The notes beneath the pieces were generated by a model. The model made no database searches and was not told the DNA's origin. It saw nothing but the letters and a program-made list of their open reading frames with translations. Below are positions 28,891 through 64,000 of a stretch of DNA of 64,000 nucleotides, piece by piece. The position numbers and the translations under genes are program-made. This DNA is from Caecitellus pseudoparvulus (lineage: Eukaryota > Protista > Bigyra: Bicosoecida). The first letter of the stretch is position 1, and each line of letters starts with the position of its first letter. The stretch is taken from assembly GCA_965644315.1 (NCBI GenBank), contig CBFFRQ010000066.1, positions 310,001 through 374,000 on the forward strand. Reading direction: 5' to 3'.

Positions 28891-31800
28891 TCAATGGCTT
28901 TCGGCGATGTGCATGCACACCACATGGCGACTGTCCTCCTCACACTCAAGCGATGCCTCGGGGTCACACAGGGCGCGGGCAGGCGGCCCACTTGCCTCGC
29001 TCCACAAGTCGGCGGCATTCCGTGCGCGCACGGTCACGTACAACAAGCGCCCACCTGGCCAGACCAGCCCTGACTCCTCGTGAATCAGGGCCGAGGCGTG
29101 GGTAGCCATGCCGACACTGGCGCAGGCCTTGACATCGTCAACGACCCCGCTGGCAGGATCCGTGCCAAGGCACCATTCGTACTCTTGCACAGGCGACTCG
29201 TCGTCCTCAGCAGGAGCCCATGTGACGTGGAAGGTATCTCCTTCTCCCCCAATCAAACAAGTTGCGTGGGTATGCTCGGCTGTGTTGAAGATGCTGCCTG
29301 CCGCAAGAACTGGTGGAGTACCGTCGACGACGACCTTGGTGGAAGCCAAGTGCACAGTGCTGCCTGAGCCACTGACCGCCGTCACGGTCGCATTTAACAC
29401 CATGCCGTGTTCTCCTGGGTACACAGTATTGAAGGAGATGAGCGGCGGCGACTGCGCGGGCAGCTCAACAGGAGCAGCTCCACCCCCGACGACAAGCGTG
29501 GGGGAGGCAAAGCTGCCAGTGACGGCTTCGAAAGCCATGCGGCCCACCTTGATGCGGGCTGACTGCGGGCTGGTCGCAGCTGCCTGCCACACTAGTACTG
29601 CAGGGCTTGTCAGAGAGCCTGCAGTGGTCACAGACGACAGCGCCACCTCCAACGCCTGTAGCCCTGACTGGGGGTCTGAAACGCCAGCCAGAACCAGCTG
29701 CAGCCCAGCAGACAGCTGCTCTGGCTGCAAGAAAACGTCGCTGCTCAGTTGTGCTGTGCCAGATGAAGACCCTGAAGGGAGCAAGAATGCACGCGGCGTC
29801 GCGCCTGGGTGCATGCCTGGAGCGGAGGTGTCCCACGTCCCAACCACACCAACTGCGCGAGTAGCGAGGCCCACGCTGTCCTCAGCGGTGATGGAGATCC
29901 ACAATGGGCCGTCAGGGGCCGTGGCAAAGTCTAAGGGCAACTCGGTGGGCTGGCTCTGCAGGGACACCTCAGAGGCCACTCCCTCGCCCAGGGCCATGGA
30001 CCCGATTGCAACGCGCACTTGAACTGGCGCGCCACTCGCATCTGTCCACCCGTCTGCAGACACGAAAAGGGGGCTGCTTGCCGCGGACAGCACGTGCAGG
30101 CTACCTTCAGCTTCTAGGACTGCGCTCTGAAGGGATGCGAGAACGCCAGTGGTCAATGTGCTCACCTGCCCGACCAGCGACAAGGAAGGCTGGAACTGCA
30201 CGGTGAAGCCTGAAGAGGCTGCAGGAGATGTTGCGATCGTCACAGAGCCCATGGCAGGAGGACTGATGTCCACTAGCACCGGTTTAGAGGCTGTCATGGC
30301 TTCACGTCCCAGGACATCCACAACACGAACAGAAACCGTGACCAAGGAGCCAGCCAGCTCAAGCCCTGAAGTATCCAGCAAGACTGGGGTGAAAGGAAGG
30401 CTGCCTTCATCTGCACAGCACGCTCCACAAGCTGACGCATCCGTGCTCAATGTGACAGCCGTCCATGTCTGGGCAACCCGTGTCACCGTGTCTCCAGATG
30501 CTTGCACAGAGTACTCGGCAGAGGCCAAGGGGGCGCCTGCCAGAGACCACGCGGGAAGGTGCACCAGGACATCGTCGCTCCCGAGCACGGCACCATGCAC
30601 TGCTAGAGGGAGAGAAACAGCCAGGTTGCTATCGCTGCCGCAGAGAACGACGGGAGCTGGCGTTGGCGGCTCAGTTACGAAAACAGATACAGGCGTAGTG
30701 CTGGGAGTGCCAGCCCCATTCACGGCGCGCAGGAGAAGGACTGAGTGCCCCGCTGGTAGACCAGCCACAGGCAGTTGCAACACGTAGTGCCCGCCGATGC
30801 CGCTCCACTCGGCTTCCCCAAGCTCTTGCCATGCAGGGTTGGAGCCGTCCAGGGGCAACATAGCGAAAGCCATTTCGCGCACGCCGCTCTCTGGATCAGT
30901 AAAGGGCGTGATAGTCGCTGAAACGATGCCCTCAGAGGCGTCACTGATCACAACATGGTCGATGAAGCCTCCAGCGAGAGAGGCACTCCATTGCGACGTG
31001 TTCCTGCCACTGCTTTCGGCAGATAAGCAATCACCAGCGAGGGGAACTGCTGCCTCAAAGAGCGCATTTCCCAGCGTCAATCGATGGGCGGTCCCAAGTT
31101 CACGTGGACCGCTCCAGATACCTCCCAGTGGCTCTCCGGCTTCGTCACTCAGTGCCAAAGCAACCACACCCGGAATGGGTGTGCTCAAGGGGCCGTCGAT
31201 GAGCACATTTGTGCTTGCCCTCGTGACGATGCCAGCCGCGGACGTGGCTTCCATGCTGACAAAGTACGTGTGCCCACTGAGAAGGGCCAGGTCTGTCCAC
31301 GAAGCAGACCCGTTCAGGCCAGGGGAGCTAACCTCGTACGGTGCAATCACGTCCCCACCCCACAGCTCCGAGCCTACACGCAGAGAAATGCCGTCCAGTG
31401 CCACTGCTGACTCAATAGTCCACTGGACAGCCAATTGAGTCATGCTGCTTTGCATGCCAAGCGTTGCCTTTTGGCAGCCATGTCCAACAGGTTGTACCTG
31501 AAGGGAGGCAACGTGTGGTGCTTGAGCCTGGATCGTGGCACCGGCTGATCTCGTTGAAGACACAAGACCAGCAGCGTTTGTGGCGTTCACCTCCACCAAC
31601 ACTTGTTGCCCATCTTGAAGTGGGGTCTGCAAGTTGAAGGTTACCTTGGAATCTCGCCCTGTGCCCACTGGCTCAGCAATCCAGGCCATGGTTGCCGCAT
31701 CCCTCAGGCCAGCAGAGAAGGTGAACCCGGCTGCACCACTTTCAGTGTCCAAAAACACCCAGCACGCTTGCACTCTGCGAGCGGAGGGCAGAAACAATGC

Positions 31801-34800
31801 GTCTGTGCCGCGCTCGCAGGCTGGCCCAAGAGCCACTCTCAACGCGTCAGGAGCCGTGACGTCCACAACCAGCCCAGTGCTAGCCTTCGATACCACGGAG
31901 CTTGGAGCGTGGGCGACGATTGTACCAAACACAGAGGTGCCTTGAGGTACGGCAGCTGATGCAACCAAACGAATGCTGCAAGTGCCAAACTGAAGATTTG
32001 CGCGAGATACCTCTGCGGAACCCACATCTGAGCTGCCAGGGCTCGTTCCCCACAAGCACTCGACTTTCTGAATAAACGAGCCCTCTACAACAGCTTGGCT
32101 CCAGCGCATGGAGAAGGCTGTGCCATTCGCCGTGTATCCTGCGTCTGTGCCGATGCCAGGTGGCACCATGGCCACAGCTCCCAGCGGCAATTCTGCTGCG
32201 GGCAATGCAACGTCCCACACAGCCCCGATGGTTGGGCGCCTCGTCACGTATTTTCGGGTCACAATGCGGGAGGCAGTGGACAAGCCAGCCGCGTTGGTCG
32301 CGACGAGGGACACCACTGCGCGGCCACTTGCCCCCACAAACACTGTCGGCGCCCACACTCCGCCAACACTCACGTCAGCCGGCACAGAGGACACCAGAAG
32401 AGGCGTCGTGTTGGCATCTGCACCATCCAGGCTGTGTCCTGTCGAAGCCACAAGGTCAGTGACGCCACTTGTTCCATCGGCAATCTTGCGAGTGTCAACA
32501 GCCACGGAAATGCCGGTTGCTCCTGTCGGTTGCGCACACGGTAGGCAGAGAGCCGGCTCGTTCCCCTGTCCAGCCTTGAACGTTCCCAACGGGCAAGCTA
32601 CACACGCGCCGACCAAGTTGAGAACTTCGCCCGCAGGGCATGTGATCGGTGGTGGAATGGAGGGGGTGAAAGCTGGTGGTGAGGGCACAGCCATTCCATC
32701 AGAGGCAGAGCCTGGGCAAGTCCCGCACAGCGCTGCATCGTTGCCGATGCTGGGCTTGCAAGCGGGAGCAGCACAGGCAGTGCACTGGCTGGTTGTCACG
32801 TTCAAGACGAAGCCAGGGCCACAAAAGCAGCCCCCCCCACCGTGCTCAAAGTCTGGAACGAAGACAGCGTGCTCATCAGAGCACAGGCAGGTGTCCCGCC
32901 CGGTCGGTGCGGCGACGGGAATTGGAAGCAACACGCTGGAGTGCACCTGCACCAGGTCCAGGCCAAGCGGCCCGCTCTCGTCGCAAGTCGCACCAGAGCT
33001 GGTGACTGTGGATGACAAGCCAGCGAAGTTGGTTGCTTGCACAGTGACAAAGACTTGCACCCCTTCTGGCAGTGTAACTTGCGCACTACCCCATGTGGCT
33101 TCTCCTCGCCCCTCGGATTCCAGCACGTCGTCTGCACCGGGGCTGGTCCCTGCCCACCAGGCGTAGCTGTGGATCCCCGAAGCATCGCTGAAGTCCTTCC
33201 ACGTGGCTCGCAACACAGAGCAAGATGCAAGGAAGTCTGCGTCTTGTGCGGTCGCGGGTCCGTCCAGCACAACACCTCCAACTGGGCCGCTTGTCACAAC
33301 TGCAATCGGCTGCGATACGGCAGTGGTCGTCAAACCCGCGCCGTTGATGAAGGTGACCGAACAGACATACTTCTTTTGGTTCTCCAGAGGCACTGGGAGG
33401 GAGCCGTCACTGGTGGAGAAGTCAGCACTCTGCTCGGCTGGGTCAGGGGATGCCACGACTGAAATGATCGTGCTCACAGGGCTAAGCGAGCCTGTGCTGC
33501 TCTGCAGCATGAGCTGAGCATCGAAAGCTGCAATGGAAGAGACTGGGTCTTGTCCTCGTTCCCATGCACACTTCGCAGCGCTCGTAGAAGTCTGGAAGCG
33601 AGAGCGACTTGCATGGAAAACACTGCCTGGGAGAGGCGCAGTGTCGTCGGCCACGACGGGCAGCGCAGCCACTGCAGCCCGCAGCCCAGATGGGTTTTCA
33701 CCCACAACAGACACAAAATACTGCACTCCTGGTGTGAGAGACAAGCCAGTGATGCTGGCAGAGAGAGCTGCTCCGTAGTCCTCGTACTCCTTCGCATTTG
33801 CCGCGTAAGGGGAAGTGCCGACAGCAACGAAGTAGCTCATGTGTGCTGGGTTTGCTTCAGCATCTAGGAAGGCTGCCCAACGCACTTCAAGCTCAGATGT
33901 GGACTGCACGTACAGTGCAGAGGGTGCATGCGCTGGCCGCTCCACTGTCACGGTCTGCGCAACAGGGGCAGTTGTGTCAGGGGTGAACACAGCCGTGGCC
34001 ACAGCGCTGACAGCCCCTTCCGCCGCCGAGGCAACAACTGTGATCGTGTACTGCTGTCCCGGGACAAGAGGGAGGTTTGAGGCTTCAGCAAATGTCGCAA
34101 AGCCGACATCCTGCTGGGCCATGATGCTGGTGTCTCCAGCTCCGATCCCGATGGACCACTTAAAAGCCAAGACCTGGTGCGGGTCACGCGAGTGCACGTC
34201 GGTGTCATCCCGCCATGCAGACCAGTCCACAAGCACAGTGTCATTGCTGGAAATGTACTCTGCATGCACAAGTGCGTTGGGCAGCACAATGTCTCCATCC
34301 AGAACTGGGGCCGAAGTGTCCACCACAACGCCATCCGAGGACACACTGACAGGCACGAGAGCCCGGTTGTACATGGTGACCGTAACGAAGTACTGCACCC
34401 CAGATACCAGAGCAACTGGCGGTGTCAAAGTGCACTGAGTTGCAGAGGCCGGGAGTGTGATGACAGCTGCAGTGTCGCACGCCCCCGCGCTGGTGCCAGC
34501 ACAGCACTCAAAGTGATCCACCTGCGAGTCAGGGTCGTAGAAGGCGTCGTGGATCCATGAGCCATTCTCGAGGCGGGCATCTTGGTACAGCCACGTGGCA
34601 GTCAGGGACTGGTCATCAGCCGTGTACCGCTTACTGACTCCGTGCACGTCCCCGTCGTACACAACGCCGGGGATAGGCGGCGTTGAGTCGGTGATTGCAC
34701 CTGCACTCTCAACTGCTGCACTGACAAGCCCACCAGGGTTGACAGCACGAATCTGGAAGCAATACTCCAGGCCATTTTGCATCGCCAGGCCTGTTGCAGT

Positions 34801-37800
34801 GAACGAAGTGGCTGTTGCAGGAGTCACATCTGTCCACCCTCGCACGTCCAGCAAGCCCGGATCCCCGTTTCCACACCAGCGGATGGCATACTGGTATTGC
34901 ACGATGCTAGACACGTCCTCTGTGAAGCCAGACCACGAGGCTGTCGCTGTGCTTTGGGTAGGTCTGTGCAGAACAGTCGGACCACCGTGGGTCGCAGTGT
35001 CCCGCACCACAGCGTTCGTTGCGTCGGGGGGTGTCGTGTCGGACACGAAGCCGTCGGAGGCCACATCTGCCCACAGGCCGTTGCTGGCTACGCCGCGCAC
35101 AACGACATAGTACGTGCTGCCCACGACCAACGAAGTGACACTGGGATTGGAAGCTGCCGTGACATTGCTGCCTACGAATGTAAGGGGCAGCACATCCATG
35201 GGGTGCGTGGAGAGGTCGTCGATTCCAGCAGGCGGAGGGGTGGTGGTGACTCCCCAAAGGTAGCTCACCATTACAGCATCTCCCGCATCCCACCCACCCC
35301 AGCTGGCCACGACCTCCAACTGGGAGTGGCCATCTGTGTCGTGCAGCAATGATTCCAGCGGGTTGATGTCGTTCACATAAGCTGCGGCTGTTGATGGGCG
35401 ACTCTGTTCGATGGCCAGCAGCTGCGGCGGTGCGACGATCAGGTTGCCAGCTCTGTCATGACAGCGCACCCAGGCATGAACCTCTCCAGATGCAGGCATG
35501 GAGAAGGAGCCTTGCGTGCGCCACGGCACACTTGAGATGCACCTGCCATGCTGTGGACCGGGTTCAGGACTGAGGGCAGTCCAAGGTGTGAACGAGTCCT
35601 CCACAGTGTCGGTGCCAATGCTTGCTTCACAGGTTGCAAGGCACGACTCGGAGTCCAAGAAGGAAACTAGCACACGGAGGTGATCAGCTGCTGCAGAGGC
35701 AAGCACTGGTGTGGAGTCAGCGTCAAATGCCGCGGGATTGTCTCCGAACGTGCCGTACTGCATGAGGCTTCCTGGAACATCTGCCGCCAAAACGGAAGCG
35801 CTCGCTTCGGGCGCAATGGTGTCAATCATCACACCGTCGGACAGCCTCGTCGTAGAGAGCCCAGCCGCATTGAGCGCAGTGATGAAGGTATACACTGTCG
35901 TCCCAGAGCGGATGCTGTAATCCAGCTGGAAAACAGTCGACAGGTCTCCTGCGGGCACGATCCGAGCTTGGGCAATGTCATCGGTGGGCCGACCAAGAAC
36001 CGAGCCAATTCCAACCGTAAAGTGAACGATGGGGCTCGCATCCTCAGTCCACTGCGGCCAGTGCACGTGAAGCTGGTCAGGGGAGTTCTGGTAGTCAATG
36101 TCACACGTCGTCAAGTCTCCATTGTTCTCCAGGGGCGGGAGTCCGGTGCCAGCCGCGATGCAGTCAACGCCGTCTCGCAGCCCATTGAAGACGGGGGCTG
36201 TGTTGTCATATGTGATGTTGTCAGAAGACAGGATGGTGAACAAACCACCTCGGTTAGAAGCTTTCATGTGCACCGTGTACGTGCTGGCGTGAACCATGGC
36301 CAGAGTTTGGAAGGTGAAGAATGCAACCGGCGCGACGTCTATCCAGGTATCAGTGGGGGAGCCCGTGTTCACAAGCGAGCACGAGGAAACGTCAGCATGG
36401 TCTCTGGTAACACAGAACTGATAGTCAAGCAGCCCCCCGCGCGAGCTCTCTGAATCGAAGAAGCCATTCCACTGCCAAGACAGCACGTTGCGTCGTGTGT
36501 AATCTCTGTCCACGTCGGGGGACACATCCCCGAATACGTACTCCGACACGTCAACCTCCCGCACCCCCGCGCCAGCTGCAAGCAGAGGACGGGTCGTGTC
36601 AACCACAAATACTGGACTGCAAGCTGTGACGGAATCTCCGCCCACCGTTGAGTATTGGGCGACCCACTTGTAGGACCCGCCTGGTCTCATGGGCACTACG
36701 GGTGGCACAGAGAAGTAAACGTCGGACAGAGGGAGAAGGTCTGCATATCCACTTGCCAAGATATCCACTGCCAGGTGAGTGGTTGCTTTGGAGTAGGCGT
36801 GCAGGGCGTCCCGGAGGATCCATGAACCGCCGCTACTGCTGGCTCCTGCAGCTGCGGCTGTGGAAGCGACCGCGTTTGCTGGCGTACTGACATCCTTACA
36901 CTCGCTGCTCCACGACTGTGTGGCGGACTGCGCAGGCTGCATGGTATGCTCTGCAAAGGCCCCCGCGGGACATATTTCTGGCGGCAGCAGGCACAAAGAT
37001 GGCAAGGACCTGCCACACTGCTCAGCACGCAGCACACTCTGCGCGCCAAGCTCTGCACACGAGCCTTCGACGCGGAGCGCAGGCTCGCCTGCAGCCCAAG
37101 GCAAGCCACTGGTGTCTGAAGGTAGCCTGTGCGAGCCTGCTGCTGCCCAAATGCCGGGGCTGGCGCCGTCATTCAGAGATGTCCAGCAGGCACTTCCACA
37201 TAGCTCACGCAGCTGCCTCGCTTCACTTTCCGTGCGGGGTGTGGCCAGCTGCCCCCCTGTGGCTGCACATGCAGTTGCCGCATTGGCCCAAGTGGCGCTG
37301 CTCTGCAGCTTGGCGCAGGCGGGCTGCCCGACACCTTGCTGAACGTACTGCGTCCCGCTTGGGCACACATGCACAGGGGATACGCAGATGCCATGGTGCT
37401 GCTGCGTGCTGCTCACAGGAATGGCACGGAGAGTCCGGGAGTCGGCATGAAGCAGCACCCTGGCTCCAGAAGCGTCTGGTTCGGCTGCTGCCCAAGGCAG
37501 ACGAGACTGCTCTTCGCCTTCCCACAGCTCACCTGTCGGCAGCCAATCTTGCGAGAACCAGACTCCGCCAGCCTTGCGTGTGCCGAGCCAGCATTCTGAA
37601 CCTGTCGGGCAAATTGCTGCCAAGGAAGCAAGCGCATCTGGGCTGCTTGTGGAGACTGAAGCCAGCACTGCCCCAAATGTTGAACATTCACTGTCAGCCG
37701 CTGTGAAAGTTGATGCGCCTGCGGTCAATCGGGCACAGGTGCTTTCTCCAGAAGAGGAGACTATCGGAGAGAACCCGGCAGGGCAATCGAACACAGCTCG

Positions 37801-40800
37801 TTCACAGACGAATGCATGAAGCTCACTGCGCGCAGCGGTGGTCAGCTGCACGGTAAGATCATTCAACGAGCTTGAGAAACGGGCGGCATCTCCACCCACA
37901 GACGGGGAAGCGGGGGGGAAGGTTGAAGCCCATGGAAGGGATGACAGCTGCCCTGCCCCAAGAGTTGGCTGAGTCAGCTCCCATGCTCCTGACCCTGTCG
38001 CATCCTGCAAGCCCACCCAGCAGTCCAAGTCCAGCGCAAAGCACTCAGCAAAGGCGCTCACACGCAGCGTTGGTTCTTCAATGGAAGAAAACAGCCAAGC
38101 CCCTTCTGCTTCACATGTTGTTTGTGCAGCTGCAAAGTCAGCCTTGTCAGCGTGGAACTTGATGCAGCGGGAGTTCGTGCTGTTTCGGCTACTAACCAAC
38201 CTCCAGCCGGATGGGCATGACTGTAGTGGGACTCGCCCGCCAAGTGTATCATCAATCAAGTCAGTGTCACACCGTGCAGCCTCAGATTCCGCCGAGATGG
38301 CGGCGAGGCCCAGAGAGACGCTCAGCGCATCACATGAAACACCAAAGTCAGAGAGTTTGATGCTCATGCCGCTGTGGACAGGGACAATTGGACTTGGATC
38401 TTCAATGGCACCTTCGGCGGTAAACAGGCCATGGGGGTGATCAGAGCTCCAGAGAAGGTCCACTGTGCCCGGCTCCGCAAAAGATGGCACTGTTGGCTGG
38501 CCCGCAGTGTAACCTACACAAATTGCCGTGTCGTCGCAGATGGGAGAGAGGCGGCACTCGTTAATGCGCTTTTCCCCACACATGTGCTCATCGGCAAGCT
38601 GATAGAATACGGCATCACAGCTGCCGAGTCCATTGCACACGTAGCTGGAGTGACACTCCTGTGCATCGCAAGTGTATCCGGTGCCACCACACACGCCCGA
38701 CGTGCATGTGTCGTCGAAAGTGCAGAGGTCAGAATCGTCACAAGCCAGACCATCAACCCTGTTCGTCCAGGCTGTTTCGTCCTGCACCACATCACAGTAC
38801 TGGCAGTACGGCGCACTTGGGTTCACGTCGCCGTGGGCGTAGTCCACACCGTTGATTGTGCAGCCGCACAGCTTGTCTGGGCCCCGCACGACAACAGAGC
38901 CTCCGTATCCAGGCTTGATAGAGCATCCTCCGGTGCCATCGCACACCTCGCAGTCCTTTGCTTCATCAAGGGTAAACTCATACATATTACAGGTCGTGTA
39001 CGGCGTACCTTGACAGGTTCCGGCTGATGAACACTGGTCGGAGTGCGTGCAGGCAAGCTCATCATCGCAAGTGGTTGTCGCCTCCTTCTTCGTCCACAGC
39101 ATGAACGCCCCAGCGCCACCCGGGTCACACCAAAAGCATTGCGCATGGATGTCATCAGGGGTGTCCCTAGGACGATCAGAGTGGTACGCGTGGCACTGCC
39201 GCTCGCCGTTGCGGTCCAATATGGAGCACGCGTCGTCGTCGTTGCACTCTGTGCAACGGAACGACACCATCATTGCGCCGGGTTGCTCTAGCTCTCCTGC
39301 TTGAAGGGCTGTGCGCCACTCGTCTGCCTGGAGCGCAGGCGCGGATCCAGAGCTTGCTGTGAGAGCAGGGTCAGGCGTCCCAGGCCTGTCAGTCGAGCTT
39401 ATGGTAAAGTCTATGGAAAAGAAACCGGAACCTCCGCCACCTCCAGATCGCCCATCGCCTGCTACAGCACCCCCACCTCCGCCCCACAGCCCCCCGCCGC
39501 CATCAGCAGCGTAGTCCACACACGCAACGCCTGGCGAGCACTGCTGCACGGCGCCACTGCCTCCAATCCCACGCCTTCCACGGCTTCCAATGCCCGGCAA
39601 GTTTGCAAGGGGCGTCGTGGCCACACCACCAGCTCCACCTTGGACTCCGGTGCCGGCAGTTCCACCTGAAGCGGTCAAGGCAGCACCTCCCGCAGTGCCA
39701 GCGGCGCCACCACCGCTACCACCAGCTCCACACACTCGTGCATCTGGGCCAATTGAACCACCGCCACCACCACCCCCTCCAGCGACAAGCCACGAATCAG
39801 CGGGGTTTGTAGAGTACAGAGCAGCGCCTCCACCTGCGCCTCGATTCGCTCGAGGCTGCCCGGTTGAAAGGTCCCAAGGGAAGCCCATGCCCAGGCCAGA
39901 AGTGCCGTTACTCAGCACAGTCCAAGAGCTGGATGCAGGACCAAAGGCAAAAGAGTGTGTCTCAGGCGCCACTGAGTACTTCTCGGCCACTTTGCCGATG
40001 CTCATGGAGAGCTGCAGATCTGGCGTGACTCGAATGCGGGCCGTGGCGGCCCCCCCACCGCCGCCAACACAAGAAGTATCTGAGAGTCCTTGCGGGGAAG
40101 GGCCACCTCCACCACCCCATGCGGTCACGTCAGCTGCAAGTGCGCCTGGGGGGGTGCGGATGAGGTGTGTTCCTGGCGCTTGCACTGCTACACTGCGCCT
40201 GAAGGGGCAAAGGGGGGCCAGCGCAATGGCGTGGATGGCCACCGATCCCAGCCCCAGACCTCCGACTCCCACACCGGGGCCCAACATTGTCGACGTGACG
40301 GAGCCCGGGAGAGCACCGTAACCAGGGATCATCGTAGCGTACTCAATCGCAGGGCCGAGGAAGCTTGTCCCTCCACCACCTCCAGTGGCAATTCCGTGAG
40401 AGGACGCCCCAGCGCCCCCCCCGATATATCCCCCACCCCCGCCTCCACCATGGCGTAAAGCACTAGGTTCAACACAAGCACTCACACCCTGCCGATGACG
40501 CCCCCCTGGGGCTCCCCAGGTGCAGTCTTCAGCGGCATGGGCAGTGTCTGAGAAAGCCAAGCCACCTCCACCGGAAGCAGATTGCGGCAGGAGGGTCACC
40601 GAGGCAGGGTTCACGCCTCCAACTCCACCTGACACAAGTGTGACATCTCCACCACTCTCCTCAAGGAGAGTCGGCGCAGTCTGACCTTCAGTGCCACCCC
40701 CTGCACCCCCAGGTCCAGTCCCCGCACCGCCTCCTCCGCCAGCCACGAGCAACTCGCGCTGCGCATCGAATGCTCCACCAACAGCAGAGGCATCCAGCAC

Positions 40801-46068: not shown

Positions 46069-46843
46069 GTTGCTTTCAATCAGGGCGCAGCTTTGGTCGT
46101 TGACCTCTGTGAAACACGCCAAGCGCGAAACAGATGGTTGGTGACACGAGGCTCATTGGGGACCGCGGCGGCCTGGGGAGCCGAGAAAATGACATGACTC
46201 GCATCAAGGCTCACCTGGACGACACGACTGCCTGGGTTGGAGTCCTGGGTGAGGAAGGCGCGACCTCGTGGTCTCAGCAAACGTTGCGAGAGCAATGTCA
46301 GCTGACAGGCCGCACTCAGCTCGACAAGCTGACACTCCCTCGGCAGGAATGGGCGCTATGAAAGCTTTCCAATGCACGGCAAGCAGGTGCAAGCCAGCAT
46401 GGGGGGCTTGTGTTTAAAGCTTGTGAGTCCGGAGGTGCAAGTGCAAGCGCTGTTCTTCAAGGTGCTGCAGCCCCCCCCCCCCCGCGTTGAATAGCGCGCT
46501 TGGAAACGCCGACAGTTTGGCAGGCTGGCGTTTCATTCTTCGGAGCTGCCTAGCTCAGTGAGCTTGGAGAGTTGGGATGAGCCTCGGGGGTAACACGTTT
46601 GGATCATGCATATCATGACTGTGATTGCTTGGGAAGGCATTGGGTGCCGTGCAGCAGCCAAATTGAGGGGCGGAGGGTGGTCGGTGTCGCAGACGCGCCG
46701 TTGATGCGCTCTGACACTAGACGCGGACGGGAAGCGACGCACTGCTGCGGTAGTCCAGCAGATCAGGTCATTTTCAAACCGCTTCCAGGCTCAACAGCCT
46801 CAACTTCGTTACTCTCTCTGCATTCGCCTTCCTCTGCTGTGCG
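46069..46843. promoter_or_regulatory. Probable bidirectional promoter region between the two giant genes
   Basis: 775 nt between divergent ATGs. Central C13 run at 46471-46483, GTGCAAG at about 46387, 46435 and 46441, and TTTAAA at about 46413. Confidence 0.5.
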
Positions 46844-52800: not shown

Positions 52801-55800
52801 TTTGCCGCGAACTGTGCACCTGAACCAGGGAACACTATGACCACCTTGCAAGCATGGGACCAGGAACGCCAAGCATTGAGCGCGATTCATGATGCTCATG
52901 CAGCATTTGCTGCGCTGGTTCGCGCTGCAGCTGGGGATATGGACCTGCCTGTGTCTCTTCCCGGTGCGGTCGCTGCCCAGGCCCACTTTGTCCAAGAGAG
53001 CCAGGACCTTGAAGAGCGACTTGCGAATCTCACGACAAGTACAGCCAGGAGCATCTCTTCTGTAGTCTGTTCTAGCCAGGTGCTCGTGCAAGGTGGCGAT
53101 GCTTTGTCGGTCCGGTCTGCTTTGTTGGACAGTCTTGAGGAGGACCTCGAGTGGCCCGACCTGCGGAGTTTGGCACTGAACAGCATCGTGGCAGTTGCAA
53201 ACTCTGATGCTGCGGCAAGCTCTTCTTCGAAGCTTCTGCGGGCTTGTGGCGCTAGCCTTGGCCACCCCAGCTCTTTGACCAGCCTGCAGAGCTCCCTTGT
53301 CTCGGCAAGCCTCCCTTCCGCCGTTGCTGAGGCGAGCTCAGAAGCCCTTGTGCAGCTTGCGGATGCAGTGCAGGCTGTCAGGGACCAGCTGACTTCTGTG
53401 CAGCAAGTGTGGGCGTCGATTGACCGTGCCGTCGCAGCTCTGCAATCCCTGAGCTTGTCTATTCCAACAGGACAAGCGACCGAACTGTCAGACGGGGCAC
53501 TTTTGGCTGCTGTGACCGCCATCTCAAGTGACGCAGTTTCGTTGGATGCACTCAGCTCACTGCCAGGTGCAGCTGCTCATGCCTTTTCCAAGCTTGCCAA
53601 CGCCTCCGCGGCCACCCACACCCTCCATGCCTCCCCCTCTTCTGGTTCAGCTTCTCTCGCAGCAGCACAAATTGAAGCTCTGCTTTCATCTAAAGAGGTG
53701 CTTGTGAGAGGCTTGGTAGGATTGAATGTCTACAGGACGCTTGAGAAGCTTGGCTCAGCAAGTGTGCTCATGGAGGACTTGGGTAGCGCCGCCTTGGCGA
53801 GTGAGGCGGCTGCGCAGCTTGCCGAGGCAATCTCCAACGGCGATTGGACTAGTGCTCAGTCCTCCAATGCTGAACTGCTTCCAGCTAGTACTAGTGCTGT
53901 GCCGAAACTTAGCGGCACTGAGGTAGAGGACGTCCTGAGATCCTGCAGTGAGTTGAGCTTGTGGTTGTCTGAGGGTTCGTTGTGGAATCAAAATGCCCAG
54001 GGCAACCTCGAGCACGCCACTCTGACCCTCTCAAAGGCACTGCAGAGCATGGGCGCTGATCTTCGCTTTTCTGTTCAGTGGCAAGCGGCTGCTCTTGAGG
54101 CTCGTGAAGGCGCGAGTCAGCGCTCGTGGCTATCTGAAGTGAATGCTTCCATTGCAGCTGGCCAAGTCTCGGGAGAAATGCTGTCAGAATCAATCGATAT
54201 GGCGAGCAAGTGTACTATGGGTCAATGTGATGCATTTAAGCGTGCGGTGCAGTCAGTGTCTGCATTCAAGCTGGTGGCTTCCCTTGAGCGATCTTTGTCG
54301 GAAGCGACGAGCGATAGAATTGCTGCAGATGTCCTCCACTTCGGTGTGGCTCCCTTGGCCTTTTTTGTGAACGTCTCACAGGCTGGGAAAAGCAAAGAAC
54401 TTGCATCCGACCTCTTGGCCGTCGTTACTCAGCCTGCGTCACTCTCGCTGGACCTGCCTCCCGCCCGCGTTTGGCCTGCAGATGACGTCCACACACTGCT
54501 CACGACAACTATGCAAGCGCTTGCTGAAGCCATGCAACTACAGGATCACCCGAACATTGTCTGGGCAAGTGCAAAGAAGGATTGGTATGGCTCCATGCTG
54601 CGCGCCTTTCACGAACCAGGCTCACGCTCTCACGCCTTGTCAGAAGCTGCCACAGTCACCGCCACTGGTGCTGCCTCTGCGGCAGTGTCAAAGGCCTTCA
54701 CAAACTCACACATGCTTCGTTTGACTTCCACTGAGAGCTCCAGTGACTTGATTTCACTTGTGCGGGACCTGCTGCGACAAACCATCGTGCCTCCGTCCGG
54801 CAGCTCTTCCCTGTTGCACCAAGCCACGTTGTCCTCATTGAGTGGAGAGGTGCTGAAAGACGAAAGTGATCCGAATGCTTCAGTCACTCCAGCTTGGCCC
54901 GCTGCGCCGGCCTGGGGTGTTCAGATCAGCGTGCTCCAACGTCGCATTGCTGACGTAGAAGCCAGCTTGGATGCCTCAGCTGGCCAGGGTGATGCAGAAG
55001 CTCTTTCCTTGCTTCTTGGACCCGAAGTACCGTCCCAGCTGGTCTCTACCATTGCCGAAGAGCTTCACCGTGTGGATCCTTTGTTGAAGCTTCAAGCGGC
55101 AGCTGACTCTGTTTTGGGCACCCTTGACTCGTTGGGGCTGCTGTTTGAATTTGAAAGCTCTCGCCCAGCTGAGTATGAGGCGGTCCGTGATGCCTTGCAA
55201 GCTGTCCAGACAACCACCCAGGCTGCGCTCTTGCAGCTTCCTTCACTAGTGAAGTGCTCACCAGACTGTGCCTCTGGGTACTCGGCAGATGGCGCGCTTC
55301 AAGTCAGCCCTGAGTTCATCAGTCAAGTGCACGGCGCAGTGGGCCAGGCCACGGAGGCTCTGCGTGCTGCAAGATCGGTGGTAGCACCACATTTAGCTGT
55401 GGCGTTGTATGCAGCTGTTCCAGCTCAGGAGCGTGAAGCGTTAGTGGAGGTAGCGGACGTGCTCATGGACAGAGGCGATAGCTCCTTCGAGCAAGCGCTG
55501 CTGGCTACCATGGTGTCTCTTCGCTGGATGCTCACCCTCCGTACGCTCATGTCCGTTCCTGAAGGTGACACCGATACCTTCAAGGAGTGGGCAGAGCGAG
55601 TCCCGTCATCTTGGCTTCTCCCTGCAGCCGGCACGCTTGCGGATATTGTTGCTTCACCAAGCGAAGGACCTGTAAAGCTGCTGCACAGGCTGCAAACACC
55701 CTTCATGCAGTCAGTTCCGGTACCAATGGTAGCTATTGGGGCACCTCTGCACGTTACCACAAGCTTGACCGATGCGCCGAGCCTTTTCGACGCAACTTGC

Positions 55801-58800
55801 CTCAGTTCGAGCTTCAGTGCGGGCCATCCTTTCAGTTTCGAGTACACTGCAGGCCAAGTTCTGCCCAACTTGGCTGCAAGCTCACCTAGCTTGCCAGGCG
55901 ACGCTACAAGGGCCAAGATGTTTGCTATGGTACATGCTTTGGTTGTGTCACTACCATGCCCAAGTTCCACAGAGGGTGCCACCATGTCCGCGCTGCCTGG
56001 CTTTTCTGCTTTCGTTGCAAGCATGAGCGAGGTAGCAGCGCCTGTGCTGGTGAACGCATCAAGTATGTTAGCCCAATCTGCAGCCTCGCTACAGTTGAAT
56101 AGCTCCGCCCAAGCAATTTTTCTGCGTGCCTCACACACGACGCGGCAGCTCTCAACCGTAGCTGGTTTCGAAGGGAGCCTCAAACTCCGTCAGAGCGTGG
56201 CCGAGGATGCTTCGTCACTGCTGGCGCAAGCAGCGGACATCTTGTCAGAACGTGGTTCTGTGGGCATGAGACCAGACTCTGAATGTGCTACTTCCATGCG
56301 TGTTTTGCCAGAGGCAGTCGAGGCAGACATTGCTGCTCCAGGCTTTGAAGAGCTTCTTCCTGCGGCTAACTTCACAGGCGCCTGCCCTTCACCCGAAAGC
56401 CTTGGAAGGATGGTTTCTTTGGCAACAAAAGCCATGTCAGCTGCACGCCTCATCGAGGCCAGTTCCGCTCGCGTGCGTCTTGGGGCACTCCTCGCCCTGC
56501 GCTCGGCTGTTAGCGATCCTGCATATGCGACCCCGTTCCTCTTCAGCACTTCGTTGAGCGGCTCTGAGACAGGTGTAGTTTCTCGCATTGTAGCTGCACT
56601 TGAGAACAGCCCCGCCAAGTCGCTACTCGAACTGGAGAGTTTGACCAGCGCACGAGCTGCACAGCTTGCTCGGCCAGGTCCGCTCTCACAGCTCGTGCTT
56701 GTATTGGGCTTGACTGGTAGCGGTAGCATTGATCAGCCTACGCTGGCGCAGATTCTTCTTGAGCAGAGCCCCATGAATAGTGTGTGGCCCATTATCTTGC
56801 ACGAAGAGCTGCCCAAGGACACATTCGGTGCACTAGCAGAAGCCGTCATCTACAGCGCTCTGGGCACCAGCATCCCTGAGGTTGAACTTGATGCAACCTG
56901 CATGTCAGCGCTTTCTTCCTTCACCCAGGGCCTGCCCCCTTCAGGTACCAGCATGTCTGTCCAGTGTCCTTTGACTGACGAAGGGCTGAACGGACTTTCG
57001 GCTGCAAGCGTGCATGCTTCAGTGGCTGACATCCTCCAGCACCGGTCTACGATCCGTACTGATTTCGCACACGAGCTTGCCCAAGCTCAGGCTGCTATCA
57101 GTAACTCCTCCCGGTCTCTGTCAGTATCTGTGGTGCTGCACGAACTCCGAAGTAGCGAAGAGGCTCTGAAAATGGCTGGCTTCGAATTTGCGGCTTTGCT
57201 CCACGCTGTGCCGAGCGCCATGCCAGGTTCTTCTGTGACAGACGTTCTCTTGTCCACTGCGGGGGCCATCGAGCAGGCATCTGTATGCAAACTGGCAGCC
57301 CATGTGCGTTGTCCTTCAAGTCTGACCCTCAACGCTTTGCACACGCTTGCTCGGGTGGTTGCCCAAGCTACCACCTTGGTGAGTCAAGTGCCTGTATCAC
57401 CACATGTATCGAGCCCTGCAGCTTGCGCTGCCCAAACGCTCGCTGCCTTGACCTCGGCCACCGGATCAGTCTCTTGCCAGACTGTCAAGGCGGCACGGCT
57501 GTCTACTTTGACCATGTCTGAGCTTTTGTCAGTCCAGGCAGCCGTCTGGGAGGGACCGAAGCTGATGGGCTCAGAGCCTTGGCTTATGGAATCTGCACCT
57601 GCTGGACTGCTGAGCACCTTGCAGCAAGTTGATGCGCTTCCATGGACGTTGTCACCGGAACCTGGGCTTTGTGCGTGCGCACAGGGCAGCAGTGTGCTGC
57701 GTTTCCACAACGCAACCGACTCTCATTTGACCGAGTTGGTGGACTCGTTGCTGAGCAAGTCTCCGGCCGACCAGCTGGGTGTTTCGGTCGGCGGAGGAAC
57801 GATACGCCTGTCTTTGTCACAAGCAACCGTGGGGCGAATCTTGCTTGTCGCCCCCCATGCCCTTGAAGTGCAGCAGGCAAAGTCGGTGCCAGCCCTCGCA
57901 CATCTCCCTAGCCCACCACCGGCTGGCAGTTCTCTCGGCTCTGGTGTGTCAGGGGCACATGTTGCTCCCTGGCGAGCGCTGCGGGCAGCATGGGATACTC
58001 TGCACTTGCAAGTGGAGCAATCGCTAGCGGCACCACTCCGTGAGGCAGCAGAAGCCGCTACTCTGCAAAGCGTGGCGCACAGCACAGCGCGGCTCCCTAC
58101 CCCTCTTGCAAGTGAGACTGCAAGGCACGCATTGTTGAGCAGCAAGGTAGCAGATCCGTCGCAGAATTGCTCTCTTGCGAGTTTCATTCCTTCTTCTGGT
58201 GTCCACATTTGGGCTGACCTGAGTTCTACCACGCAAGTAGATTCCACGCCTTCCCAGATGTGCACGGGATCTCTCATCGCAGCAGCTCTACAGGAGGTGC
58301 AGCTATCGGGCACATCGACCCCTCTCTCGCTTCGTGTGACAGCCTTGCTTAAGGATGCCGATTCGCTCCTGAGCGCAAGGGAACCTGATCACACCCCAAC
58401 TCCGGCTGAACAAGCTCATGCGCTGAAACTTGCCAGTCAGTTGACCACAGCAGCTCATACTGCGACTGCATTCAGTGGTAGTCTTGGGGCTCGTCTGGGG
58501 GCGGTGTCTTTGGCACTACTTCGCCCGGCTTTACTGCAGGATTTCGTGGTCACAGCAGCCCTGGATGCGGCAGCTGGCGTGCATGACACAGCGGCCGGCA
58601 CTTGGGAAGTGCTCATTTCTGAGACTGAGAGTATTGCGCTGCCTTTTGACAAGTCTATGCAAGCCTCTTCGCTTGCTGCTGAGCTGACTGTGGGTTTGGC
58701 AAAGAATGCGTCGGTCGCGGTGTCAGCAGCGGTGAACCCATCCACTCTGGGAGCGCTACTGGTAGAAGCCCAGGCATGTCGTGGACTTGATGACGCTTCC

Positions 58801-61800
58801 GCAGATGTTCTTTCAGAGGCATCATTTCTACTGGCATCAAGCTCGCTTTCTGCTGCGGAGCAGTCGCTGGCAGCGAGTGTGGCTCTTGCGTCCATGAACT
58901 CTGCACCAGCTTGCGTGCAGGAGGCGCTCGCCCCCTACAACGCAGTGCAGCTTCCGGCGCCCTTGCTACACGTGGCTCAACGTGCACTTGACACTACGAT
59001 CCTTCGAGCTGCATCAGCCTCGGCCCTTTCTTCGCGCGAGACAGTGGAGGCAGCAGTGAATGGTCAGGTCAACTCAGAGGACCTTGCATCTGCTCAGAGG
59101 GGCATCCTCAGTGCAGGCGACGAATGGGGCTTGACCCTGAGCTTCACTGCGCAGATTCTCCCCCATGACTTCGCTGGCTGCTTGGCACAGTTGCCCCTCT
59201 CCCACGCCTGCGCAACGCAGGCCATGTACAGCGCGGAACGTGACGCTCGCCAACTACACGCTCTTCTTGCAATAGACGGGGCAGTTGAAGCAGCAGGCAA
59301 TGCTATCCTGAGCATTCCTGCAGTCCCATTGCCCTTCTCATCTGCTGGCGCTTCTGCATCTGTTCTGGAGTCTGCGGTTGATCCGTTGAAGGGGTCCATT
59401 TCTGGTGCTGTCGCGACATTGCTGCAAGATTTCGTCTTGAGTGTCGGTTGCAGCGCCCAAGAGCCCCTGCGCCTTGTCCGAGAATCCTGCGAACATCTTT
59501 TGCTTCCACTGGACTCTTCCATCTCGAAGCCTGCCCAAGCACTGGCGGAAGTTTGCACAAAGCTGGCAGGTGTTCAGCAAGCACCAACTGCCCCTTGTTA
59601 CACTGACTTCGAGTCCACCAGTCAGAAGCTGCAGGCTATTTCCGAGGCCTTGCATTCAAACGCAACACTTCGATCTTCCTGGGCCTATTTTGCAGAGGAA
59701 GTGTCTGATGCTCTGGGCGGCTTGCTGGGACTGAACATCTCAACGTGGTCCAGCTGGGCGTCAGAGTTGGGCAACGATTCTGGTAGCGAAGTCTCGGAGT
59801 CTCTTGAACTCCTGGAACAGAGCATTTCAGATCTGGGTCTGCACGCCGGCCACGCTGTTGTGTTGCGTGGGGTTGGCTCACTGGACGGGATAATTTCAGG
59901 CGCAACATCTTTTGCCGATTCTGCTGCCCAAGCCGTTAAAGCCCTAGGCGAGGCAGCATCCAGTTCCAGTGCCTCCTCCAGCGACGCTTGGAAGCTTGCT
60001 GTTGAAGCTTCCTCCTCGTCATTGGGCCAGTCAAGCCTGCTGGCACCTTCCCTGCGCCACAGTCTAGGTGCGACCCTCCGGGCACGTAACACCACGATGT
60101 GCACAGAGGCTGAAGCAATCGGTGAAGTTCCTTGCGCCAATGTGACAGCAGTCTTGTTGAACGAGTCTTTGCGGTCAGCATTGGCCGTCCTGAGCCAATT
60201 CTCAGCCTGGCCGCTCTTGCAGCCGGTTGAAGCAGGGGAGCTCCACAGTGCTCTTGCTGATCCACTTCAACTCACATCAGACTACTCCCAGGCTGGGCTA
60301 CTGGTAGATCCGCGCGGTATCCTGGATTCCACTGTCCAAGTTCTGGCTTCGGTTGAGCATCTCGGCCAAGCTGCACTCCTCGCAGCTGTCTTAGGTCTGG
60401 CTTCCCACACCACGCAAGTGCTTGGTGTTGCAGCATCGGGACAGACAGCTGCTCAGCTGGCTGAGGCAGCCGTCCCCGCGTCAATATCTGCCTTGACTTC
60501 AGTGCAGCAAGCATTGGCACCATTGTCAGCGGTTGCAGATGTCAATATTCGCAGGATGTCGTCCGCCCAACTCAACCACTCTGTTGCTGTGGTTGTCAAT
60601 GTTCTGGAATCCTTCGAAGCCGCACATGCCTCCAGCACTTCCGTGCTTGGCGGATCCTTACCGCTTGCACTGAACAGCTCTTCCTTCAGTAAGCATGCTG
60701 TTGTGTCAGCTCTAACGACAATCAAGGACACTTTGAGATTCGCGGCGCTTGCCGCTCCTTCTCTTGCAACTGCTGGCGGTTTCTGGCACTCGGCTCCAGA
60801 GTGGCCTCAGGAATCGAGACTTCCAAGCCAGGCTGTGTCATTTGGATCGTCCGTTGCTCCCGCGGTGGCTTCTCTTGGCAATCTTTTGGTCCACAACCAG
60901 GCCCAAGTGCAAGCTGACCAAGTGCCCATTCTTGCGGGTGTGCTGCACGCGCTCGGTGCGACTTGGTCACACCACCTTGCCCCTGCCGTTGAAGCATCCG
61001 CTGGCCTAGAATGCTCGGTGCTCATGCATGACGCATTCCAGGCCTCACAAGCCTTGGTGTTCGCCTTGAACAACCCTCTGGCCGGTTCAACTGCGTCAAC
61101 TTCTTTTACAACCAGCATTGAGAAGCTTCACATGGCACGTGAACAAGTACAGCTGTGCCATGCATGGTATCTGCAGGTGTCTACTTCCCGTCAGTACGAG
61201 CTGGAGACCATGTTCGACGACCTTGCGGCTTTGCAGACATCCCTGCAAGATCTGCAGGAGTCTGCTACTTTTGAGACCACGACGAGCGCCCAGCTTCACG
61301 ATGTTACGGCAGCAATTACGCGTGTCCTGCAACTCCAAGGGAGTGCACAAGGCAGGAGGCTCGGAGACCTTGGACTTCACGACCTTGCTGCCCTATCTGA
61401 CAGGCTGAGTGTTGTGCGAAGTAGGCAGGCCAGCGCACTGCCTCTGCTTGCAACTCTCCCACTTCCCCAAGGATTGGCTGGGAGAGCTCTTTCGAGTGTT
61501 GTGGTGGGTTTGGGGAGTGTGCAGGCGAGGGGTGTGGATCTGGCTGGTGCTGCTGCACTTCTGGAGCTCGACAGCCTGCTTCGGCTTGAAACATCGCTGG
61601 GGGTGGTTCAGCGCTGTCGAAGTGAGTCCTTGGCGCCGGCTGCCAAGATCTTAGACTCTCTTGACGATGTATCATTGATCACTGACGATCTTGTGTCTGA
61701 CTCGATGGCATGGACCATGTGGCAGTGGGCTGAACTCGTGCCAAGCGCTGCACGCGGCTCCAAGTTGGTGGCCAGCCTGTCCCACCTGACCCGAACGCTT

Positions 61801-64000
61801 GAGGCAGCTTCGGCATCTCTGTCAGGTATCGCCACTGCAGCCGACATCGAGGCGGCTCATACTGTGCTTGAGCTCGCTCGATCTGCACAGGATCACCTTG
61901 CAGTGTGGCTGGATCCTTCGAGTGGAGAATTCGCACTTGGCACCCCAGCATCTCAGAAGCAGCTCGCCCTCACCGTTCTGGCATTGGCCAAGCTCAAGCA
62001 AGCGTCCTGCTCGGCATCTAGCGAGGCAGCTTCCCTTTTGCAACATGTTGCAGCTGCACTCCGCGCGACTTGCGTGGACAACCTGGCCGGTGTTGTGACC
62101 TTTGACACCCTGCGTTCTTCCGCACGCTTCCTTGAAGTCCACGAAACAGTCCAAGAAAGGCTGGGAGCAGCATCAGATGTCTTGCTCCTGGAGCTGCAAG
62201 GCGCCCAAGAGAGTGACATCATTGATGTTGCACGGCCGGCTATGGAGGCAGCGGCTGCGGTTGCAACTCGCAGCGCAGACATGCTAGCAGTCGAACTTGA
62301 AGAACGATTAGTGCTCCTCAACGAGGGAGTTCTTAGCAGCATTCCAAGGCCAGCTGAGTTGAGCCAGTTGGTTAATGTGATGCAGGGCATGCAAAGCACC
62401 CTCCAGGATAGTGTACGAGCTGCAGCTGAGGCTGAAGCAGAGATGCAGCCAGTTCTAGACGATGCTGCCTTCGTGCTGCGCGCTTTGGCGACCACCGCAG
62501 ATGACGCCTCCACCGTGTTCGACCAGCTAGATATGTTCTCAGACCTATTAGACACGTTGAATCACTTCTTGCAAGAAGCGCCGGTGCACGTGCGGTCGGT
62601 TGAAGCAAACGCTGAGGAAGCACTCGCTGAAGTGCAAAGCTGGGCGCAAGATGCTCTCCAAATGGGAATCAGCGACCTTAGTACGCAGTTGACACTGGTG
62701 GCTGGATCCATTGCACGTGAGATGGAGGCAAGCCTCGTTGTCGGGACTGAAGCACTGCTCGAGGCAGGCGAAGGGATGGCTGCCAACGGCTCTCTCCACT
62801 TGCCCTCGTCGCCATTCAGCGCGATGTCCACCGTAGCTACTGCTGCCCATCAAAACCTTCTGGACACTCTGTTTGAAGGTGACTGCAGCCGATTTGACAC
62901 CTTCTCCAAGATCGTCGGCAGCCTTGCAGGAGTCGCAACAACGACAGATGAACCAGCAGTTCGCCAGGCAGCTCTGGAAGCCACCGGCGCTCTTCAGGGC
63001 ATTTCACGGCATGCGATTGGAGTTCGTCACTTCTCTTCGCGCACAAACACGTCAGCTGAGCGATACATGCAGTTTGCTCAGCATGTGCCTGCTCTCCTTG
63101 CCGAGCTTGACGGCATTCAAGCGTCGGCAAGCGTTTTGGACACCGCCTTCGTTCAGACCCTGCAGCACGCCGCGGCTCAGTGGGCCAAACGCATTCCTGC
63201 CTCGCTCCAGAAGCTTGCTGCGTCAGCACAAGGTGCAGCTGGCTCAGCTCGCGAAGCCCTCATTCCATCCGTTGCTACCGTTGCCGAAGCCGTGTCCCGA
63301 CACGCTGATTCGTTGGACTCACAACTCACACAGGCAAAGAGCGGCCGAGAAGTTGTATCTGTCATGTATCAGACAATTGACTTGTTGCAGGACGAGCTTG
63401 ACTCCATCTCTCAATCCCTTTCCCAGCTCACCTCGGCAGCCGAGGAATCATCGCGAGCACTGCAGAGCATGAGCCCCATCCTGCAGTTGGTGAATGGAGC
63501 GAGTCCGTTGATGTCAGAGTTCAACGATCTGCAGCAGCAAGCATTGAGCGTGTCTGCTGCCCTTCCCAGCATGCTTCGGACGTATGCCTCGCAGTCATGC
63601 GTTGAGGGCGCTTTGTGCATCCGCACGGCGATGAACGGGCAGCTTGGAGAGCTGCACGACGTAGTCACTCGCATCAGCGACGGAGTGGTTGGCAGCAACG
63701 CGCTGCTACGGGGCATTAATAACCTCCTTCCCCCATCTCTTGAAGCCGCTGCTGCGGCGTCGGAAATGCTCAACGGAGTTGCACAGGCGGTGCAGCATCA
63801 TGCGGTCGAAGGCCCGCTCGGCGCAAAAGGTGCCATGCGATCAGCCGCAGTGGCTGCCATCTCAAGCGCTTCCAAGCTCACTGAAGTAAGTGACACTGTT
63901 GGTGGTTTCTTGCTGCGAGCATCAGCTGCCGTCCATGAATACGGCCGCATCGGCCCGTCTGTTGCCCACGACCTCACCATCATTGCTGAGTCAGGCTGGG
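46844..64000 (+). CDS. Giant secreted protein (at least 5,680 aa, 3' end outside window) with a vitellogenin/MTP-like lipid-transport N-terminal module and a very long Ala/Leu/Ser-rich helical body; exons 46844-47247, 47346->64000
   Basis: Signal-like MGAFSILAVGAAVGAVGA. Motifs PGSVWEYEWTTQL, FHEPFLLETFANGSLSHVW..ESVESLNNKKGLASSL and VWEGDDIGGAWWHY, then helical repeats (IANPTDETVTTLL, ILLDLGALA, MHALANARLP, VRTQALAAI). The ORF track has no stop-terminated ORF in this frame after 47347, and the lines I translated read open through 64000. Confidence 0.88.
47248..47345 (+). other. Spliceosomal intron (98 nt)
   Basis: GTGCGT...TTTCGCAG, phase 2; joins ..ESLN-N-KKGLASSL, a vitellogenin-like N-x-K-K-G motif. 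Confidence 0.85.

Follow-up and report, generated by a model that had tools for sequence, protein, structure and literature searches.

The window analysed here, 64,000 nt of a contig of the protist Caecitellus pseudoparvulus (CBFFRQ010000066.1, forward strand, positions 310,001 to 374,000; G000:C66:310001-374000 in the numbering used below), comes from a 30.6-Mb assembly of 215 contigs and carries two divergently transcribed giant genes. Gene A, on the minus strand, encodes a secreted protein of 5,725 residues, and gene B, on the plus strand, encodes a protein of 12,463 residues that is predicted to end in a membrane anchor outside the window. Because the pairing of A-like with B-like genes recurs elsewhere in the genome and in environmental relatives, A and B probably work together on the cell surface. 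We put the probability that the two genes form a conserved unit encoding two chains of a giant cell-surface structure of this marine protist at roughly 45%. The features of the locus are as follows.

28891-46068, minus strand: gene A, a single-exon coding sequence of 5,725 aa plus stop; secreted, without a transmembrane (TM) segment or a tail of the glycosylphosphatidylinositol (GPI) type
46012-46068, minus strand: signal peptide of A, MKAFTAFFAFMALSAVAFA, read from the sequence
44569-45891, minus strand: head of A (residues ~60-500), which begins with a segment resembling a beta-helix and continues as a long Gly-rich stretch
41290-44454, minus strand: array 1 of C-type lectin-like domains (CTLDs), seven domains, residues 539-1593, delimited by an iterated hidden Markov model (HMM)
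39289-41151, minus strand: two modules resembling ALK/LTK-type glycine-rich domains, residues ~1640-2260, with a borderline Pfam match
38239-39276, minus strand: 32-cysteine domain of A, 346 aa, residues 2265-2610, between the two CTLD arrays
37027-38175, minus strand: CTLD array 2, three domains, residues 2632-3014, delimited by iterated HMM
28972-36600, minus strand: at least 14 FN3-like repeats of ~110 aa each, residues 3157-5699, found with a repeat HMM
28894-28971, minus strand: C-terminal tail of A with three Cys, including CDPEASLECEEDSRHVVC, kept at the extreme end of the paralogues on contigs C2 and C34
46069-46843, no strand: divergent intergenic region of 775 bp, a putative bidirectional promoter
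46844-47247, plus strand: exon 1 of gene B, signal peptide and start of the head, 134 codons plus 2 nt
47248-47345, plus strand: predicted intron of gene B, 98 nt, GT..AG, with its joint seen in an RNA contig
47346-64000, plus strand: the part of exon 2 of gene B inside the window; the exon runs on to G000:C66:394333
46844-50310, plus strand: head module of B, ~1,000-1,100 aa, a candidate large-lipid-transfer (vitellogenin/MTP-like) module
within 47974-49686, plus strand: alpha-solenoid of the B head, the only confidently modelled part of the head, with a predicted local distance difference test score (pLDDT) around 90 in two blocks
50311-64000, plus strand: Ala/Leu/Ser-rich helical region of B, ~4,600 aa, extending ~260 nt past the window

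Gene A occupies an open reading frame (ORF) at 28891-46122 of the minus strand, in which the ATG at 46068 opens a run of 5,725 codons free of stops. A hydrophobicity check of the whole protein found no TM-like stretch. Since the three-Cys tail also ends the C2 and C34 paralogues, A appears to be complete at its C-terminus and no downstream exon is expected. Between its signal peptide and this tail, A is a mosaic of recognition-type modules and repeats. It passes the Pfam profile PF00059 (Lectin_C) at 97.7 bits (cut-off 22.6), and the iterated HMM delimited ten CTLDs, none of which (0 of 10) has an EPN, QPD or WND sugar-binding motif. Glycan recognition, which the initial annotation had ascribed to one of the two chains, thus finds no support in the sequence of A. 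Residues 1676-1905 pass PF12810 (ALK_LTK_GRD) narrowly, at 24.8 bits against a cut-off of 24.5, and a Pfam search returned no matching family for the 32-cysteine domain. The head of A has a single further copy in the genome, a weak one on C18.

The plus-strand frame that begins at the ATG at 46844 reaches a stop after 146 codons, and a second frame, opening at 47311, stays open to the end of the window. The two are joined by the 98-nt intron: a marine metatranscriptome contig, 95-99% identical to the window, skips these 98 nt and links 47247 to 47346, and an intron occupies the same position in the C34 paralogue. Exon 2 reaches 20.3 kb beyond the window and comprises 12,340 codons, which brings the whole of B to 12,463 aa and ~1.3 MDa. 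Past the window, B continues in order with a globular stretch, a hydrophobic beta-rich domain, at least 28 FN3-like repeats, K319L-like PKD domains, a TM helix and a tail. The helix is the sole strongly hydrophobic stretch of B (exon-2 residues 12,246-12,271) and is followed by a tail of 69 aa; in the part of B inside the window, the hydrophobicity check found no TM-like stretch. Because this helix and tail close the protein, B is predicted to be a type I membrane protein, anchored rather than freely secreted. The initial annotation had described a nearly intron-free pair of giant secreted proteins of more than 5,600 aa, with signal peptides, start codons at 46068 and 46844 and no membrane anchor in the visible part. 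Its gene structures agree with ours, as does the missing anchor within the window; extension of the contig, which it had proposed in order to complete the second gene, leaves 'secreted' correct for A and incorrect for B.

Exon 1 and exon 2 of B were searched and folded as separate sequences, not as the spliced protein. The first 5,563 residues of exon 2 matched no Pfam family, and the membrane-proximal part, outside the window, passes the Pfam PKD profiles (PF22352 K319L-like_PKD / PF18911, 53.5 and 36.7 bits, cut-off 27). In the helical region, hydrophobic periodicity at 3.4-3.75 residues is enriched 1.7-1.8-fold; this region holds 48 Cys, many of them closely paired, and BLAST found no internal repeats in it. 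The best-conserved part of B is its middle, where a hydrophobic, beta-rich, Cys-containing domain lies (L002:2763-3545; G000:C66:376763-377545; exon-2 residues ~6,485-6,745) that is 42-44% identical among paralogues. This domain has no Pfam match and an Atlas feature search gave no lead (top score 0.76); it could be a functional core or a contact site.

A and B are not wholly independent sequences. An HMM built from six B repeats detects ~15 repeats in A (best 1.5e-15), which indicates that the two proteins are partly related through a stalk-like repeat array, their heads being unrelated. With the iterated repeat HMM we found at least 14 repeats in A and at least 28 in B, each ~110 aa long and FN3-like; those of A carry the motifs W.gF.D.eSGI..Y and SDGv.vD.TPP. 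Scores against fn3/Ig-like Pfam profiles reach 27.7-33.6 bits for whole proteins (cut-off 25), and we call the repeats 'FN3-like' because no single stretch passes the fn3 profile by itself and the comparison was one of sequence. A genome search with the common repeat returned 399 candidates, spread over dozens of open frames that are 4,000-13,500 aa long.

The head of B finds full-length relatives on the plus strand of C34 (11,839-aa frame), the minus strand of C34 (12,430 aa) and C2 (13,507 aa), along with weaker relatives on C31, C57 and C36. According to match tables, from which the architecture of the paralogues was read, the full-length, colinear copies fall into three deep lineages, represented by C66, C2 and C34; identity among them is 29-36% for the N-terminus, 35-44% for the middle and 33-36% for the PKD tail. 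A search with the central 1,000 aa of A found eleven A-like genes at 37-41% identity. Two of these lie head-to-head with a B-like gene: a 4,910-aa frame on C2 (20567-35296, minus strand) and a 5,367-aa frame on C34 (159943-176043, minus strand), the latter with further 5' exons up to ~178.1 kb. Both proteins are 33-34% identical to A over 4,000-5,000 aa and have the same C-terminal Cys tail. The distance from start to start is 775 bp on C66, 728 bp on C34 and ~900-950 bp on C2, so that A and B, on opposite strands with 775 bp from ATG to ATG, fall within the ~1 kb taken here as the limit for a bidirectional pair. At ~30-36% identity on full-length or N-terminal comparison, the three head-to-head pairs appear to have diverged anciently.

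Copies without a partner look different in age. The B-like gene on the minus strand of C34 is 99% identical to its plus-strand counterpart at the protein N-terminus and forms part of an inverted duplicate, 97% identical in DNA, that takes in ~530 bp of the spacer and not the A-like gene. On C37, C44 and C140, the A-like genes are 92% (DNA) and ~89-95% (protein) identical to the body of the C2 gene, with the homology ending inside the ORF. The unpaired copies examined are therefore recent duplicates, which leaves every deep lineage of the close B family, three in all, paired head-to-head with a different deep lineage of A. Plus-strand ORFs beside the minus-strand C34 copy were considered as an A-like partner and rejected, as they belong to a reverse-transcriptase element; an RVT_1 ORF (L009:5962-8136; G000:C34:145962-148136) flanks the inverted B-like copy on its head side, where the duplication ends. 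Frames on C4 and C172, cut by contig ends, score exactly as the two C34 B-like genes do and are probably haplotigs or assembly duplicates.

A second arrangement exists among the more distant relatives. On C31 and C57, a 4,402-aa anchorless secreted gene that shows a weak match to the Cys-rich region of A is followed in tandem, after 0.4 kb, by a distant B-like gene that encodes its own signal peptide. We considered whether these loci represent an A-B fusion and discarded the idea, since a stop and ~0.4 kb separate the B-like ORF from the gene before it, and this ORF begins with a Met and a signal peptide of its own. Large frames also adjoin two other family members. Just upstream of the C27 A-like gene, on the same strand, is an open frame of at least 4,352 aa with no BLAST similarity to A or B (L022-L023; G000:C27:56002-69057), and the distant B-like gene on C36 is preceded in tandem by one of at least 2,886 aa with LRR_6 repeats (L033:2-8659; G000:C36:58002-66659).

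The pairing extends beyond this genome. A HMMER scan of 1.84 billion representatives with the B head yielded only 18 matches. Environmental contig L028 (GC 51%) has a B-like gene in head-to-head arrangement with a gene whose product is at least 3,110 aa long; residues 364-703 of this product align with the Cys block of A at 32% identity (E 1e-28). On L037/L038 (GC 64.5%), a B-like gene is separated by 577 bp, again head-to-head, from a gene called as 828 + 5,863 aa, a homologue of the L028 partner in which the 32-Cys block recurs. On L024/L026 (GC 65%), the partner facing a B-like gene (called as ~1,000 aa then ~10,900 aa) is a secreted TSP1/ephrin-receptor-like mosaic, in head-to-head orientation and truncated at the contig end. 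The environmental pairs differ in GC content and show 23-38% identity. A metagenome scaffold, L025, holds a copy of the A/B locus that is 91-98% identical to the present one and for that reason adds no independent evidence. The initial annotation had suggested asking whether homologues are again adjacent and divergent, and on C2, C34, L028 and L037/L038 they are. The pair thereby withstands the refuting condition that the annotation had set, namely homologues unlinked in other genomes. That three ancient pairs and two environmental lineages keep the head-to-head arrangement supports a functional linkage between the genes. The C2 and C34 paralogues and the L028 partner gene keep all 32 Cys of the domain of A, suggesting that the 32-cysteine domain is the part of A that accompanies B-like genes across lineages.

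Protein homologue searches were less productive. One with residues 1600-3300 of A found none, one with the profile of the B head found only a near-identical fragment (P0001), and one with A residues 2230-3229 found only a bacterial protein, P0048 (L035:10001-13084). The latter, 1,027 aa long and encoded on a 5-Mb contig with Omp85/OmpH neighbours, is 37% identical to the Cys-rich region of A over 16% of the query and contains weak Dicty_CTDC repeats. The environmental contig L005 has a 1,075-aa minus-strand ORF (L005:6346-9573), transposase-like by eye, between two B-like helical coding stretches; it may be an insertion inside the gene of a B homologue. In the libraries searched, we found no description of the A or B protein families.

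Contigs of one metatranscriptome fall on both genes, at 45252-45705 for A and 46880-49868 for B; such contigs cannot rank expression, and transcription is proven for B only, by the splice joint. The intergenic region is 91% identical in the metagenome scaffold of the near relative (L025). Over the middle of the spacer (46400-46800) there is no contig from either of the two runs compared with the window, and run X2 covers both flanks at a depth of ~100. Elsewhere in the window, positions 18001-20000 stand out by a GC content of 0.737, a GC skew of +0.39, an AT skew of -0.32 and long overlapping ORFs in several frames.

Gene structures, the predicted membrane topology, the common repeat family and the recurrent pairing can all be read from the sequences, and from these we infer co-regulation, physical association and a biological role of A and B. 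In the model that we favour, B would be the membrane-anchored chain, a filament projecting from the cell. Outward from the membrane it would consist of a short cytoplasmic tail, the TM helix, the PKD domains, the FN3-like repeats, the conserved middle domain (exon-2 residues ~6,536-7,062), a ~4,600-aa stretch of amphipathic helix and, at the far end, a head possibly of the large-lipid-transfer type. A would be made simultaneously with B from a common divergent promoter of ~0.8 kb and secreted, and its attachment to B would keep it at the cell surface. Its CTLD, glycine-rich and 32-Cys modules would be displayed there to recognise prey, particles or partner cells. Contact might be made through the 32-Cys domain, the FN3-like arrays or the C-terminal Cys tail.

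Several observations weigh against this model. At least five A-like loci (C27, C33/C86, C37, C44 and C140) have no B-like neighbour, and on L027 the only gene upstream of the B-like one encodes a small membrane protein. The intergenic regions of C66, C2 and C34 share no k-mers or motif beyond what shuffled sequence gives. The C31/C57 genes are in tandem and not divergent, and a common promoter is therefore not essential to the A-B link. Because giant repeat-bearing ORFs number in the dozens in this genome, a giant neighbour is no rarity, and adjacency that follows block duplication can persist without selection.

One alternative, which we consider rather unlikely, is that A and B are co-regulated without binding each other. 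They would then be independent parts of one surface or feeding programme, such as a coat or a capture apparatus, and the bidirectional promoter would serve only their joint production. Mammalian head-to-head gene pairs within 1 kb are generally co-expressed (PMC2194621), and both the short divergent spacing kept in three old pairs and the presence of contigs from one RNA library on both genes are in keeping with this explanation. It leaves unexplained, however, why the partner has the same 32-Cys domain across distant lineages and why a tandem pair exists on C31 and C57.

Less likely again is that the adjacency is inherited and functionless, an ancestral block of ~55 kb with two unrelated giant adhesin genes having been duplicated and the neighbours having simply stayed together. 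Duplication is certainly active in the A and B families, where copies of 97-99% and 92-95% identity are present, and the many A-like genes without a B neighbour, the lack of a conserved promoter motif among the three spacers and the abundance of giant ORFs with the same repeat would all be expected. Yet both partners have diverged to ~30-36% identity while their spacing has stayed at 0.7-0.95 kb, the pairing is also found on environmental contigs of different GC content at 23-38% identity, and every examinable unpaired copy of the close B family is recent. These points argue against inherited adjacency.

The remaining alternatives turn on the head of B, whose N-terminal part is beta-rich and is followed by a HEAT-like alpha-solenoid, then by a small piece rich in Cys and finally by a beta-sheet piece. 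The initial annotation had called 46844-50100 vitellogenin-like. Neither exon 1 nor exon 2 of B matches Pfam PF01347 (Vitellogenin_N), even at E <= 10. Seven distant family members (P0003, P0007, P0009, P0011, P0013, P0016 and P0017) do pass this profile, at 26.7-47.7 bits against a cut-off of 24; their matches span only profile positions ~479-562, where they overlap HEAT_2. By Atlas language-model features, the B head lies nearest to Vitellogenin_N/MTP clusters (score 0.90, 184-185 shared features). The solenoid that follows the N-terminal sheet, a mark of the large lipid transfer family, is confidently modelled in two independent models, and in both of them MTP (chain 6i7s_H) is the best natural-protein match by TM-score (probability 1.00, TMq 0.19-0.20, E 3.7e-3 / 4.9e-4). 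Generic HEAT/ARM proteins match the head solenoid as well as or better than MTP does, a profile of the head family run against Protein Data Bank (PDB) sequences recovers only alphaRep/HEAT-type proteins, and VIA and Atlas shape searches with the head model recover only HEAT/ARM proteins. The beta parts of the head, where an N-terminal beta-barrel and the C and A sheets of a lipid cavity would lie, have pLDDT below 50 in both models. The second of these models, of the relative P0013 with its contiguous N-terminus, places the first 550 residues at pLDDT 25-50 and so gives no confident beta-barrel. At the expected place the head has the sequence ..N.KKG..S.L.., which we take to be a motif of the large lipid transfer family and which reads IMSMKRGMLSALQ in the C31 paralogue. 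In our view, a head of the large-lipid-transfer type is plausible, with only its HEAT-like solenoid confidently modelled: the vitellogenin-like label gains from the relatives that pass the cut-off and from MTP as best natural fold match, and loses by the missing PF01347 match on B itself. A 1,089-aa product on a 3.6-kb contig (L040; GCA_905221625.1, CAJNDU010023231.1) matches the beta-sheet piece of B at E 1.7e-8.

A fuller version of the two-chain unit builds on such a head and seems to us improbable. In it, A and B would be an undescribed, ancient two-gene module of marine protists that has multiplied into several variants of different specificity. A ~1.3-MDa anchored filament with a true large-lipid-transfer tip and an obligatory 32-Cys secreted partner would assemble into an organelle on the cell surface that seizes prey membranes or particles. 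Were this true, the tip of B would be the first large-lipid-transfer module of its kind outside animals. Least probable of all, despite the feature score, the PF01347 matches of relatives, the MTP match and the amphipathic periodicity of the helical region, is that B binds lipid or membranes through its head and amphipathic helices, in the manner of animal vitellogenin and apoB, and A binds glycans, the two together seizing prey membranes or carrying lipid: B has no PF01347 match, that of its relatives is confined to the part overlapping HEAT_2, profile and shape searches yield only HEAT-type proteins, the parts needed for a lipid cavity are modelled at low confidence and no CTLD of A has a sugar-binding motif. 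This last explanation overlaps with co-regulation without contact.

If the pairing is functional, as the conserved two-chain unit would have it, the locus offers a testable handle on the role and assembly of giant extracellular proteins in heterotrophic marine protists. It would provide an anchored chain, a secreted partner and, in the 32-Cys domain that has no Pfam family, a candidate interaction domain. A B head that turned out to be a true lipid-transfer module would push the origin of the vitellogenin/apoB/MTP superfamily beyond the animals.

The literature searched describes the large lipid transfer family from animals (PMC1783640). Like its members vitellogenin, apoB, apolipophorin and MTP, B has a signal peptide, a beta-rich N-terminus, an alpha-solenoid and then a beta-sheet piece. 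Unlike them, B is no soluble lipoprotein: the module tips a 12,463-aa type I membrane protein, PF01347 does not match it, and a beta-barrel and lipid cavity are only candidates. With the giant repeat adhesins of bacteria, A and B have in common long Ig/FN3-like extender arrays that hold binding modules far from the cell surface; they differ from these in being eukaryotic, in having signal peptides and, on B, a type I TM anchor, in forming a two-gene pair and in the 4,600-aa helical segment. For A riding on B, an analogy can be found in the FRAS1/FREM complex of the animal matrix, in which a giant anchored chain and secreted giant chains with common repeat types depend on each other at the cell surface. 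The domains of that complex are unrelated to those of A and B and its genes are not known to be adjacent, so the likeness is one of analogy only.

For the gene arrangement itself, the initial annotation knew of no named system with this layout, and collagen IV supplies one. Its genes form three paralogous head-to-head pairs (COL4A1/A2, A3/A4 and A5/A6) derived from a duplicated ancestral pair (PMC12141075, PMC2120565). As with A and B, there are three such pairs with a short common promoter region, putative in the case of A and B, the partners have a common repeat architecture, and the products are extracellular chains (PMC12141075, PMC2120565). A and B show no sequence relationship to collagen. 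COL4 partners are paralogous over their whole length and known to co-assemble, whereas A and B share only the FN3-like array, have otherwise unrelated heads and are putative partners in assembly. Should the pairing of A and B prove functional, protists would have a counterpart to the way in which collagen IV genes are paired in animals.

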